NCBI GenBank assembly: GCA_021613535.1
Contig: CP075496.1
Coordinates: 14,260,001-14,324,000, forward strand
Length of the DNA stretch: 64,000 nucleotides
From: Adineta vaga
Taxonomy: Eukaryota; Animalia; Rotifera
Reading direction: 5' to 3'
Made by a program: the position numbers and the translations under genes. Below the pieces are notes generated by a model. That model was given only the letters and a program-made list of their open reading frames with translations, did not search any database and was not told where the DNA came from. This document shows, in pieces, positions 8,132 through 46,362 of this stretch; the first letter of the stretch is position 1; the number at the start of each line of letters is the position of its first letter.

Positions 8132-8925
8132 AACGTACTTTTGCGTTGATGTTTTCTAATAAAAATAATTTGATTTTTCTTTAACTTGCTATACATATTG
8201 TTTATATTTCGTCCATCTTCTGATTATGTTCATAATCATCTACTGCTTACTGCTGCAATGTCATCTGTTCCTGTTTGAATAAGTGTTGATAAGCTTTGCT
8301 ACAAATGAATTTATTTTATTCTGTAAATCGAAAGTATAGTTCATTCGAATGATTACACATTTCGATTAGCACAAGGTCTATGATAAAACGATTGGTAAAG
8401 AATATTGAGCAGCACGGTTTCGCTAAATATTGATTTATGTTTTTTTATATAATTAAAATAAAAACAGAAGAAGAAATATTCATATTAAACAGTTAAATCA
8501 CGATTATCAATATGAAAGTATTCATTACGCACATTTTGGTTGTTTATAGATCTCCCTCACTATTTCAAAGTCCTTTTATTTTCTTTTAGAGTACATTCTT
8601 TTCCAACAGAGTATTCCTTACAACAAAAAACTTCGACTTTTATATCATTCTCATTATAAATCAACGATAAATAGATTATCAAAACTATATAAATTATACA
8701 TACATCTATATTAATATTGTAAATGCTTCCACATATTTCATCATAGATTTCGACACAAATTCTTTAGAATTGAGAGTTATAAGTGATTTCATTCGTTTTT
8801 TCTGATGTATAATATACTTTTCAACATAATATATTTAATTCCGTACATATTTAAAACTTTCGTTTTCCTCAAAAGTAAAATTATACATTCAAAACAGAAT
8901 TATTGAAGAATTGAACATCGATACT

Positions 8926-9732
8926 TTATTTTTTACCAACAAGACCAACGAGAGCATTGACACCAGCACCAATAGCAACATTTGTAACTTTGTCTTTAAT
9001 TTTACCCCATAAACCACGTTGTACAGGTGTGAGTGATGCGAAGAATAAATCAATTTCTTGATCAACAACATCGCGTTTGCCAACAAGACCAACGAGAGCA
9101 CTGACACCAGCACCGACAGCAGCATTTGTGATTTTATCTTTGATCTTTCCCCATAAACCACGTTGTTCTGGTGTAAGTGATGCTAAAAATAAACCAATTT
9201 CTTGGTCATCAACGGAACGTTTTCCAAGGAGAAGACCTGCAGCTGCGTTAACACCGGCACCAATGGCAGCATTTGTGATTTTATCTTTGATTTTTCCCCA
9301 TAAACCACGTTGTTCAGGTGTGAGTGATGCTAAAAATTCTTGTGTAGCATCAGCATTGCGTTTTCCAAGGAGAAGACCAGCAGCTGCGTTAACACCAGCA
9401 CCGATGGCGACTGAAGTTATTTTATCTTTGATTTTACCCCATAAACCACGTTGTTCTGGTGTAAGTGATGCTAAAAATTCTTGAGTGGCATCAGCATTCA
9501 CATCACGTTTGCCAACAAGACCAACAAGAGCATTGACACCAGCACCAATAGCAACATTTGTAACTTTATCTTTGATTTTTCCCCATAAACCACGTTGTTC
9601 TGGTGTAAGTGATGCTAAAAATTGAATTTCTGCTTGAAGAAGATCATGATTTACAATTGGTTTTGGCATTGATTCTGAATAAACAGAACCAAAGAAAACT
9701 AAGGCGACGACTAAGCCGATAGGTGCGTGCAT
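8926..9732 (-). CDS. Secreted multi-peptide precursor of five amidated cationic amphipathic (antimicrobial-like) peptides
   Basis: Hydrophobic signal peptide, then five units of [acidic spacer ..FLASLTPEQR] + GLWGKIKDK(V/I)T..A(I/V)GAGV.A..GL(V/LL) + G-KR (last unit G-KK-stop); intronless intact ORF of 268 aa. Confidence 0.88.
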   Translation of the reverse strand: MHAPIGLVVALVFFGSVYSESMPKPIVNHDLLQAEIQFLASLTPEQRGLWGKIKDKVTNVAIGAGVNALVGLVGKRDVNADATQEFLASLTPEQRGLWGKIKDKITSVAIGAGVNAAAGLLLGKRNADATQEFLASLTPEQRGLWGKIKDKITNAAIGAGVNAAAGLLLGKRSVDDQEIGLFLASLTPEQRGLWGKIKDKITNAAVGAGVSALVGLVGKRDVVDQEIDLFFASLTPVQRGLWGKIKDKVTNVAIGAGVNALVGLVGKK

Positions 9733-11128
9733 CCTGCAAAATATATGTTGACAATTAAAACAAAGAAAAGCAACTTCACTGATTATTCTAAATCAATGTC
9801 ACCGTTTATATATATTTTTGTAGAACACAATGCTTTTTTTTTGAGAATGATAACATCTGTTGAGAATAATAGTTTTGATCAATGTTTTTCCACAGCTGCA
9901 TTTCTATCTCATAAAAAAATCTGTATTTTGCAATTATACAGTAAGCTTAATGTTTTTCTAAATATAATTATAGATCATGCGACTTTTTTTGAAAGAGACA
10001 GATAACTATTATCAATAAAATCTCAGCTATATGATTAGTTTCTGAGGATAATTCTCCTTCCATACTCAACTTACTTTCTTCCAAAAGTGAAATACAGAAC
10101 AACACAAGTAAAATAATAGAGAATCTGAAGATATTTTCATTCTCGTTGCAAAATCTAACAATAATTTTACAAGCTTTCATTTCTTTCGAATGGTTTTTGT
10201 TTATAATTCCATATTTGATATGACAAGGTTTGGTTCACTATATTCGTATATGTTGCTTCGCTAACGTGTGGATTCTAAAATTCGTAGTAATTGATATCGA
10301 TGATTTCCTTTTCAAATATTTCCAAATAATGATAAATTTTTCGTTACACAATCAATCTATGATAGAACAATTGATTATATATTTCATGTGAATACTTAGC
10401 AAATTTGATTCGAATTTTTTCACATCGGATTAAAAATATTTTATTATTATAATGATTCATATAATGTATAAGTAAAAGCATATAGTATCGATGTTCTCTT
10501 TTAGAATAGATTTCAACTTAGTATATCAGTAAAAGTATCTATTTCTGTCGTTAATAATATATTGGTGAATACTGCTCGGTAAATTTTTGTACTTAACAAC
10601 CTTTAATATTAGTCTCTATCGATAAAATTCTGCGACAAGAGAAGAGATAATGAATAAAAATCTATACTCAATGATTGTTCGATCGTGTGGATATAAATTT
10701 TTTGTTCATAAAAACTTCAATACTCTTTTTCAGATCGTCTGTCACAAAAACCATCGATAACATATTACCCTCGATATACGAGTAATACTATTGATGTTAA
10801 GGGTGATAAATCTATTGAAATTGAAGATTTATTTTAATTACAAAAGCAATGCTAATCACAATTCAACTTATTTTTAAAATCTTCTGCATATTCTAGTCCG
10901 ACAAGATCTTTTATCTCTCAAAGGTATATTCTTTTAAATCTCTGTAAATTTCGAAACTCCTTTCTTCGAGTGAACAATCATGCGTTAACTGAAATATTCT
11001 TTTTTTTGCGAAATCATGCTCCGCAATCATAAATAATTCAATTTCACGATCAATCAAAACTTTATTTTACTTAAAAATGAAAATGTACATTAAAAAGTAA
11101 ACTATCTTTGAATACGAATGTTGACGAT

Positions 11129-11359
11129 TTATTTCTTGCCAACAAGACCAACAAAAGCATTAGCACTAGCATCGATGGCGACTGAAGTTAATTTATCTTT
11201 GATTTTGTTGAACTAATCACGTTGTTGAGGCGTAAGTGAGGCTAAAATTTGAGCTTCAGCTTCAAGAAGATTCTAATTGACGATTGGCCATGACATTGAT
11301 TCTGATTAAACAAAACCAAAGAAAATGAATGCAATGATCAGACCGATAGGTGCTTGCAT
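11129..11359 (-). pseudogene. Single-peptide paralog of the 8926-9732 precursor, pseudogenised
   Basis: MQAPIGLIIAFIFFGFV*SESMSWPIVN*NLLEAEAQILASLTPQQRD*FNKIKDKLTSVAIDASANAFVGLVGKK*; three in-frame stops; ~400 bp of upstream sequence also resembles 9733-10130. Confidence 0.88.
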
Positions 11360-12080
11360 CTTGCAAAATATTTGTTGAAAAGTAATACCAATAAAACTAC
11401 TCCACTGATGCTTTCGCAGAAATCCTATTGTTTACATATGGTTCTGTTTTGAAGAAAGAATTGCTTTTGAGAAAGGTAACATGTGTTGGGTATTCTTTTT
11501 TTGATCAATGTTTTTCAACACCTGTATATGTATCTCATAAGGAGTGTATGTTCGACGACAAGGCATAGACTTACGACATTTTTCTATTTATAGAGACAGT
11601 TCATGCAATCTTTTGAAAAACAAAGATAAGTATTATTGAAATTTCTTTTGCTTAATATGACATAGGTAAAGTGTTAATTATATGATTGATTTTTTGAAGA
11701 TATTTCTCCTTCCATACTCAGTTTATTTTTTTTCCAAAAATGGACTACACGACAACACAAGTAGAATAATAGAGAAGAAAAATAGATATATATAGATGAA
11801 CATAGACACACGTTTGGAAGAACATCATTGGAATGAATAATATCTGAAGAGATGATAATGACGTAGAGTGAAAGAATGAAAGTTATTTACATAAATAAAG
11901 AAAAACAAACAACGAGAAAGAACATATTACTCTGAAGAGTAGGAAAACGAAGAAGAAAAAGTTATCCAATTTGTAGACAGAAGAGAAGGAACAACTGTTC
12001 AAAATAACAGATCATTTTGTACAATTTGTTTTTGAAAGAACACAAATTTGAAAATATTTATAGATATAGAGATTCAAGTT

Positions 12081-44706: not shown

Positions 44707-46362
44707 TTAAATGAGTGAAAAACGCCACACTCTATTATATTGTAATTCACTGACGAATATATAAGTATTATTAATATTGATTCGAATATCCATAGGTCCT
44801 AGCAATGATGTTGAAGCATTACTAGTTGATGCGCCATTTCCTGCAATAGTTACTCCACTTGTTGCACCCAAATACCACCGCTGTATTCGTTGATTGCCTG
44901 GATCGGCAATATAAATTATATTTTTTATTTCTGAGATGCATATTGAATACGGATTACTCAACTGATTACTTCCAGATCCTGCACCATTTCCACCAGCTAT
45001 TGTAGTTCCATTGGTAGAAACACCTACATGAAAACGTTGAATTCGGTTGTTACCTGAATCAGCAACATAAACATATGAGTGTACTTCATCATAGTAAATA
45101 CCATAGGGTGTATTGAGTTGATTACTTCCTGAACCTATTAAACCAGTACCTCCAAGAATTACACCAATGGTATTATTTGGCGAGAATTTCATCACACGAT
45201 GGTGGTTTGAGTCACAAAGATAAATATATCCTTGAGAATCAACAAATATTCCAGCTACGGTACCAAAATCACTAAGCGAGGTGCCAGATGCGCCGGTTCC
45301 AGCAACTTTAATTCCAACTGACGAATTTTTTTTCCACAACATAATTCGATAGTTCCTACTATCTGCTACATAAACATTCGATGAGACATCAACATGAATA
45401 CCCGTGGGTCCATCCAGTTGATTGAAACTATTACCTGGAAATCCGGTACCAGCAACAAGTGAACCGTTCGCAGAACCTTCGGGAAACTTAATGACTCGAT
45501 GATTTCCATAATCGGCTACGTAAAGTGCATTATCAATCCCTAGTGTCAAACCTGTTGGAGAGTACAACATATATGAAGTACTTCCAGGTGAGCCATTAGC
45601 ATTTCCTGCAGTAATATCTGCAGTTTGCATCGATGACACTATAAAATAAAATAACTTTTTGTCACTATTCTTATGTTATAATCAAATAGAAATGTTTAAT
45701 ACTACGAAAATACATATTCTAATTATTTGTAAAATATAGAACTTGAATAATATTCATTTTTTCATATTCTTCTTTATTAGAGAGAGAAATTAATAATACT
45801 TACGACCACACTGTTGACGTGCTAAGCAAGTATAATTTAAATCCTGTCGACATTCCGTTGTGTTATAACATATAGCTCCAAGTAATTTTTGACTTTGACA
45901 TATTGATCCATCAAAATATGTATTTATTTGACATTGACATGTATTATTGAGACATCTTAAGTATCGACTACCTTGACAAAATGAACATGGTTGACCACGA
46001 TTAATAAATTGTTGTTGATGAATTTTCAATGATCCAACACGAGATTGAGGAGATGCAGAATTAATAAACGAACCCATTGTTGCAATATCGCCTTCAAAAA
46101 GACGACAATATTGTGCTTGTCCATCATAATCAAATATACGACAACGACTTGTAGAATGACAAGTACGAGTACATGAAAACAAGGATTTACTTGTAAGTTC
46201 AATCAAAACGAGAGCTTGATAATTAACAGGTGAGAATTGATAACCAATATCAGATAGATTTGTTGATGATTGCCAATCAAATGAAATGCTTTTAACTTGT
46301 GTTGGCATTAACATATATGGAATCAACAGGAAAAAGTTTAAACGAAAACATAATATTATCAT
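44707..46362 (-). CDS. Secreted Apple/PAN + Cys-rich (EB-like) + NHL beta-propeller protein
   Basis: Hydrophobic N-terminus, CTRTCH..CRIFDYD..CRLFE, Cys-rich module, then repeated LxxPxGI..YVADxxNxRI NHL repeats; one intron at ~45640-45800. Confidence 0.9.

Follow-up and report, generated by a model that had tools for sequence, protein, structure and literature searches.

Layout, transcription and constraint of the gene

The window, a 64,000-nucleotide stretch of the Adineta vaga genome (assembly GCA_021613535.1, contig CP075496.1, positions 14,260,001 to 14,324,000), carries on its minus strand an ATG open reading frame (ORF) of 268 amino acids at 8926-9732. The encoded order is a signal peptide followed by five repeats of an acidic spacer ending in P-x-Q-R, a peptide of 26 to 27 residues, and G-KR or G-KK (Table 1). 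An initial annotation, made from the letters of the sequence, had described five such peptides with four distinct sequences, the first and the last being identical, each with (E/V)QR ahead of it and G-KR or G-KK behind it; once the residues were located in the ORF this description proved exact, and both flanking signals are present in all five units. All peptides share the start GLWGKIKDK, and the spacer end reads T-P-E-Q-R in four units and T-P-V-Q-R in unit 5. Tandem Repeats Finder reported a period of 144 with 4.8 copies. The signal peptide, for which the cleavage position in Table 1 is a putative one, forms the highest 19-residue hydropathy peak of the protein (1.66). A TATA-like box lies at the same distance from the ATG in a paralogue elsewhere in the genome (the C3 paralogue) and at the locus of a relative, P0001.

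Table 1. Features of the peptide precursor gene and its neighborhood (window coordinates; masses are predicted values)
Feature	Position	Strand	Protein residues	Observations
TATA-like box, ~72 nt 5' of ATG	9805..9815	-		Read from sequence; function putative
Start codon and predicted signal peptide	9676..9732	-	1-19	Hydrophobic core, small residues at -1/-3
N-terminal acidic propiece	9592..9675	-	20-47	Ends S-L-T-P-E-Q-R; from ORF and unit alignment
Peptide 1, 26 aa	9514..9591	-	48-73	G-K-R at 9505-9513; +3 if amidated; 2590.53 Da monoisotopic
Spacer 2, 19 aa	9448..9504	-		Computed net charge -3
Peptide 2, 27 aa	9367..9447	-	96-122	G-K-R at 9358-9366; 2634.56 Da
Spacer 3, 17 aa	9307..9357	-		Computed net charge -2
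Peptide 3, 27 aa	9226..9306	-	143-169	G-K-R at 9217-9225; 2633.54 Da
Spacer 4, 19 aa	9160..9216	-		Computed net charge -3
Peptide 4, 26 aa	9082..9159	-	192-217	G-K-R at 9073-9081; 2535.49 Da
Spacer 5, 19 aa	9016..9072	-		Computed net charge -3; ends P-V-Q-R
Peptide 5, 26 aa	8938..9015	-	240-265	Amino acids as in peptide 1; G-K-K at 8929-8937; stop at 8926-8928
3' UTR to poly(A) site	8787..8925	-		RNA-like contigs reach 8787-8792
Decayed one-unit tandem paralogue	11129..11359	-		Three in-frame stops; 48 bits to unit profile

The ORF is a real, transcribed gene under purifying selection. Contigs from four RNA-like runs placed on 8300-11800 cover only ~8787-9735 and leave both flanks empty; the runs were classed as RNA by an automatic guess, and the gene-shaped coverage is consistent with RNA. 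Eight loose T before 8787 on one contig (run X5) are a poly(A) trace of a minus-strand transcript, and over the same 8300-11800 interval no RNA-like contig lies on the decayed copy. At the GC content of the window (~29%), a long ORF is improbable by chance. Among the five units, pS is ~0.48 and pN is ~0.08, with a dN/dS of ~0.17 in the spacer tail (last ten residues) and in the peptide alike, and the peptides of units 1 and 5 are separated by ~4 synonymous and no nonsynonymous differences.

Of the contigs listed, one alone (run X1) extends to the 5' end; it terminates at 9735, at the AG of a ttttgcag that immediately precedes the ATG, and the TATA-like box predicts ~40 nt more of 5' UTR than this contig end. 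Positions 9733-9740 (minus strand) could be a spliced-leader acceptor; no spliced-leader letters were seen at the 5' end of the run X1 contig. One contig of run X6 lacks exactly 144 nt, or one unit (9391-9536), reflecting an allele or strain variant with four units or else a collapse of the repeat in assembly. Run X11, which bears the label of another organism, contains a divergent copy in which the units are ordered differently.

Distribution of the family

Searched with the unit profile, the genome (six contigs, 100.8 Mb) gave matches in just three places, namely, the window gene, the C3 paralogue, and the decayed copy. The C3 paralogue lies at C3:18888608-18889400, encodes 263 amino acids with five units, is ~37% identical, and has peptides of the SLWT-x-IRD type. 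No synteny was found between the window and either the region of the C3 paralogue (40 kb) or the P0001 contig. A separate coding stretch of the window (~44750-46270), which represents a multicopy gene family, has several counterparts, at 27 to 47% amino acid identity, in the 40 kb surrounding the C3 paralogue.

The same profile matched 21 of 1.84 billion representative proteins, and 16 of the matches were judged to be family members; the window protein and the C3 paralogue are themselves absent from this collection. Relatives with a species name carry the labels “unnamed” or “uncharacterized” and belong to Adineta steineri, A. ricciae, Rotaria socialis, and R. magnacalcarata; the remaining members come from ENA, JGI, and Logan assemblies. 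P0012, P0013, P0016, P0017, and P0021 were rejected as false profile matches, being short partial matches to the repeated spacer. A protein search with residues 20-62 only returned no match, a third one with alignment A3 returned no new family member, and the single match of a metagenome scan was unrelated on inspection.

Two members bear on how far the family extends. P0010, which is not obviously bdelloid, comes from JGI sample 3300018985, presumably a marine metatranscriptome judging by the JGI numbering. P0020 is a hypothetical protein annotated for the gastropod Batillaria attramentaria (profile E-value, 8e-4), with a peptide that shares 58% identity with one of P0001 across 26 residues; its snail origin is as annotated and is known from the protein record alone, and contamination of the assembly is possible. 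The family is apparently undescribed and is found across bdelloids, possibly beyond. The suggestion in the initial annotation that the system was apparently new is borne out by the searches: peptide sequence words had no relevant match in the literature, and no described family matches. Nor did the literature search turn up a paper linking rotifers to amidated antimicrobial peptides.

The family has a fast turnover, as seen in the pseudogene, the range of two to five units per gene, and the fusions to a six-cysteine domain. These fusions occur in P0009, P0018, P0019, and P0022 (R. socialis and A. steineri), in which two family-type units without Gly-basic ends are followed by a C-terminal domain of the pattern C-x3-C-x6-C-x8/9-C-x-C-x4-C. 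The domain matched no Pfam family, and the family pro-region may act as a cassette for a Cys-rich peptide. The Rotaria relatives have peptides of 40 to 42 amino acids that are almost uncharged and very hydrophobic. P0006 (L022, Logan SRR14005099) alternates two peptide types that end in G-RRKR or G-RKKR and have a net charge near zero; the stored gene translation for this member differs from the recorded protein.

Predicted processing of the precursor and comparison with known polyproteins

In an alignment of 13 units from three genes, four residues of the spacer tail (S, P, Q, and R) never vary, giving S-x-x-P-x-Q-R as the invariant motif ahead of the peptide. Trp3, Asp8, and both Gly residues are likewise invariant, and each of the 13 units closes with a Gly, after which come KR, KK, K, or a stop. 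The proposal of cleavage and amidation had been drawn from Gly plus a dibasic pair, a signature that is present in all five units here and in nearly all units of the relatives. At the other end of the peptide, the Arg is found in 13 of 13 aligned units and before every bdelloid peptide listed. In P0010 the spacer motif is lost and the Arg belongs to a KR or RR pair that immediately precedes SWWT. In P0020 the peptide starts where the signal peptide ends, in a layout of signal peptide, peptide, GKR, and short tail. From the invariant Arg, the KR or RR of P0010, and the signal peptide end of P0020, we infer that the mature N terminus lies directly after S-x-x-P-x-Q-R. The P-x-Q-R site has no basic residue at P4, P6, or P8 and is therefore not a canonical convertase site, and in P0006 a Leu takes the place of the Arg, with no basic residue upstream. 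The invariant site points to a processing protease that recognizes it.

The initial annotation had also presumed convertase cleavage and amidation by PAM, and genes for peptidylglycine alpha-hydroxylating monooxygenase (PHM) and for convertases are present in the genome. A PHM exon at C6:11965570-11965938 (L031:2071-2439, minus strand), reached through the PF03712 profile, matches rat PHM (1opm) with an E-value of 3e-20 for the exon alone, and the convertase P-domain (P_proprotein) has 11 matches. Matches to PF01082 were rejected as PHM, as they fell in DBH-like genes, most with DOMON-type exons. At least seven loci (L025-L030 and L005; C1, C3, C5, and C6) encode copper type II monooxygenases, mostly DBH/MOXD-like, and the C6 exon is the single clear PHM exon among the loci of this class.

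The reading of the gene as a polyprotein of five amidated peptides is well supported by sequence comparison. The secreted polyprotein would first lose its signal peptide, and each unit would then be cut after the invariant Arg and at the Gly-Lys-Arg behind the peptide. Trimming of the basic residues would expose the Gly, which PHM/PAL would convert to a C-terminal amide, and the predicted end products are five amidated peptides of 26 to 27 residues with four sequences.

If the precursor were cut at dibasic sites only, the products would be amidated peptides of 44 to 46 residues (~4505 to 4764 Da; net charge, 0 to +1), shaped as an acidic helix, an L-T-P kink, and a basic/hydrophobic helix, with a role in either defense or signaling. 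This alternative mainly concerns the cutting of the precursor, and we consider it quite unlikely. KR is the sole canonical site, the spacer tail is conserved as much as the peptide, and in P0006 the peptide is not preceded by a basic residue. In addition, an AF2 model of one unit, built from the 13-row alignment, is a helix-kink-helix, in which the spacer is helical, the chain breaks at L-T-P, and the peptide forms a long helix (mean pLDDT, 77.8). Against it stand the invariance of the Arg ahead of the peptide and the two outlying relatives, in which this Arg is dibasic (P0010) or at the signal peptide end (P0020), indicating that the peptide exists without the acidic part.

A further alternative, which seems very improbable, is a repeat protein that is never processed, which could cross the membrane several times or be secreted as a structural or stress protein composed of amphipathic helices. 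The peptide tails reach 19-residue hydropathy values of 1.33 to 1.64, near the usual limit of 1.6 for a membrane span, and bdelloids do have unusual secreted stress proteins. However, four of the five tails fall below that limit and contain Asn and several Gly, and such a protein would leave without explanation the Gly plus basic residues after each unit, the Gly or G-K at each C terminus, and the relatives with a single peptide.

Among known precursors, those of spiders had been taken as the model for the processing code, in which the quadruplet motif is x-x-x-Arg with a Glu. In that form, this part of the initial annotation was not supported. The quadruplet at the linker end is PEQR in four of the five units and PVQR in the fifth, and in the relatives it is mostly PQQR, PLQR, or AQQR, without Glu; the linkers follow G-K-R instead of opening with an Arg-led inverted quadruplet motif with Glu. 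Spider complex precursors consist of a signal peptide, an anionic propeptide, and cationic peptides between anionic linkers, with release at Arg and amidation from a C-terminal Gly (PMC7889660). The window gene resembles the cupiennin and latarcin precursors in its spacers of -2 to -3 between peptides of +3 (if amidated), in the putative release after an Arg, and in the Gly as a predicted amidation signal. Unlike those of spiders, its product is not a venom, and the protein scores 15.2 bits (E = 0.026) against Pfam Latarcin (PF10279), for which the cut-off is 25.

Bombinin precursors likewise hold several copies of Gly-rich, amidated, helical peptides with acidic spacers, and magainin is another amphibian antimicrobial peptide with a multicopy precursor. 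When language-model features were compared with the Atlas, Bombinin was the nearest cluster with 0.82, and Moricin scored 0.81; neither value reaches 0.9, and they serve as leads only. The window protein has no Pfam Bombinin match and no sequence homology to bombinins, and precursors of the bombinin and magainin type may be regarded as functional analogues only.

Like the window gene, multicopy precursors of amidated neuropeptides in protostomes begin with a signal peptide, carry their peptides as tandem copies with Gly plus dibasic ends, and depend on PHM. They differ in that the window peptides are long and hydrophobic, with a conserved N terminus and a variable C terminus, and in that the site upstream of each peptide is monobasic and noncanonical. 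The Pfam scan of the window protein, run at E-values up to 10, listed 19 families, none of them a neuropeptide family. The matches above the cut-off (DUF3693, LTXXQ, and GA module) were dismissed as artefacts, being sums of partial matches of 17 to 38 residues to the spacer, which contains L-T-x-x-Q. The gene would work like known multicopy precursors of linear peptides and belongs to none of them.

Peptide properties and candidate modes of action

In the window peptides, all charge lies within residues 5-9, and the tail is uncharged, rich in Ala, Gly, and Val, and of a hydrophobicity of ~0.7. The helical moment is 0.39 to 0.41 over residues 1-14 and 0.12 to 0.14 over the whole peptide, and the Boman index is ~-0.6; a low or negative Boman index is typical of peptides that partition into lipid. 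The net charge of family peptides ranges from 0 to +3, so cationicity is not a family-defining property.

The resemblance to frog dermaseptins that the initial annotation had emphasized stands for the first seven residues, a GLW-x-KIK start with Trp at position 3: dermaseptin B2 starts with GLWSKIK and all five window peptides start with GLWGKIK. A length of ~25 to 33 residues, Ala/Gly richness, and an acidic propiece are further points in common. The frog prepro region (PF03032) is not among the 19 Pfam families listed for the window protein, and with Lys confined to residues 5-9, an uncharged tail, and a low whole-peptide moment, the window peptides lack the Lys-rich amphipathic helix over most of the length that is a feature of the dermaseptin superfamily. 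Dermaseptin precursors contain one peptide, with KR before it, whereas the window precursor contains five. Convergence is the preferred reading of this likeness. Neither the dermaseptin nor the spider label goes beyond a superficial resemblance, and an antimicrobial role is a plausible candidate function.

A more regular property emerged from the 26 distinct family peptides. At positions 4, 8, 12, 16, 20, and 24, 92% of the residues are G, S, T, N, or D and 4% are hydrophobic, and hydrophobic residues make up 87% at positions 4k+2 (2, 6, 10, and so on). Asp8 and a basic residue at position 7 occur without exception, and 24 of the 26 peptides have Trp3. The peptide of the gastropod protein P0020 carries the same tetrad pattern. 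The small or polar residue at each fourth position reads as a glycine zipper-like stripe that is newly noticed here. In terms of sequence, the family is defined by the putative P-x-Q-R release motif, a [G/S]-[L/W]-W start, Asp8, this stripe, and the Gly-basic end. Small-xxx-small stripes have been linked to helix packing, oligomerization, and membrane permeabilization (PMC6175903). In CdzC/D, Tde1, amyloid-beta, and the zippers of cecropin B, they run along a hydrophobic helix, a periodicity tied to membrane insertion, oligomerization, or permeabilization (PMC6175903, PMC5380434, PMC10240207, and PMC3178497), and glycine zippers are known from membrane-permeabilizing peptides and toxins (PMC6175903, PMC5380434, and PMC10240207). 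The window stripe differs from those systems by extending along the peptide from end to end and by including Asp, Asn, Ser, and Thr in addition to Gly.

Little is known about how bdelloid rotifers defend themselves against microbes. The one study that we found credits their antimicrobial defense to horizontally acquired biosynthetic genes (PMC11258130), and in our literature search no gene-encoded antimicrobial peptide was on record for Rotifera. We infer, with a confidence just short of an even chance, that the peptides are membrane-permeabilizing defense peptides of an antimicrobial or cytolytic kind. Residues 1-11, which are Trp anchored, cationic, and amphipathic, would bind the membrane, the zipper tail would insert into it and possibly self-associate, and the acidic spacers would keep the peptides harmless within the precursor. 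Such a role is favored by the stripe together with the hydrophobic, probably amidated tail, by the Trp anchor, and by the N-terminal moment, tail hydrophobicity, charge, and Boman index given above. It is also favored by the compensation of peptide charge by spacer charge in the window gene, by the long and nearly uncharged Rotaria peptides, which suit membranes better than receptors, and by the fast turnover of the family with its Cys-rich fusions. A complex prediction with four copies of peptide 2 plus GKR scored 0.02 and is uninformative either way.

Other features do not fit a defense role as well. The positive charge is not conserved in the family, the amphipathicity of the whole peptide is low, and the Bombinin and Moricin look-alikes lie below the level at which they would count. 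The site ahead of the peptide is not a canonical convertase site, and P0006 has no basic residue there. In the best-studied families of linear antimicrobial peptides, the prepro region is conserved and the mature part is variable; here the mature N terminus is the best conserved part and is kept in the mollusk and marine metatranscriptome proteins, which is the pattern of a signaling peptide.

The precursor could instead be that of a neuropeptide or peptide hormone, with the same processing and five amidated peptides acting on a receptor and not on membranes, an alternative that the initial annotation had itself named. This is the main rival reading, and we regard it as rather unlikely. Its layout of signal peptide, repeated peptide, and Gly plus dibasic ends is the classic multicopy one, and P0020 has a simple hormone-like arrangement. 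The first eight peptide residues are the most conserved and survive in P0020 and P0010, where the spacer motif is lost, and the lack of a conserved charge also agrees with a ligand. Passages of a rotifer neuropeptide survey (preprint 10.1101/2024.07.20.604414) predict many amidated neuropeptides for bdelloids and report only known arthropod-type families. However, the C-terminal half, a part on which amidated ligands usually depend, ranges in length from 9 to 34 residues and is hydrophobic in every case. The Boman index of the window peptides is negative, and so strict a tetrad of small residues suggests that the helices pack in lipid. Gene turnover, fusion to a Cys-rich domain, the noncanonical N-terminal site, and the lack of a match to any known neuropeptide Pfam family argue against a ligand as well. 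Should the peptides be ligands after all, they would represent a new peptide-signaling system common to rotifers and at least one mollusk.

Returning to the membrane-active defense role, we tentatively raise a broader scenario, itself on the unlikely side, in which the peptides belong to an old spiralian family of gene-encoded, amidated, glycine zipper helices acting as channel or pore formers in membranes, a ribosomally made analogue of peptaibol-like channel formers. Bdelloids would have expanded this family into polyproteins, fused it to Cys-rich domains, and processed it with a protease specific for S-x-x-P-x-Q-R. If true, these would be the first gene-encoded linear defense peptides described for Rotifera.

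The family offers short, easily synthesized candidate peptides with exact predicted masses, and in either role the strict four-residue small/polar stripe would make it a clean natural model for the effects of such stripes on helices in membranes. Against the Gly-zipper families of Pfam (Gly-zipper_Omp, YMGG, and OmpA), the window protein scores 20.1 bits versus a cut-off of 25, and P0006 reaches 28.9 against a cut-off of 28.9 for YMGG.
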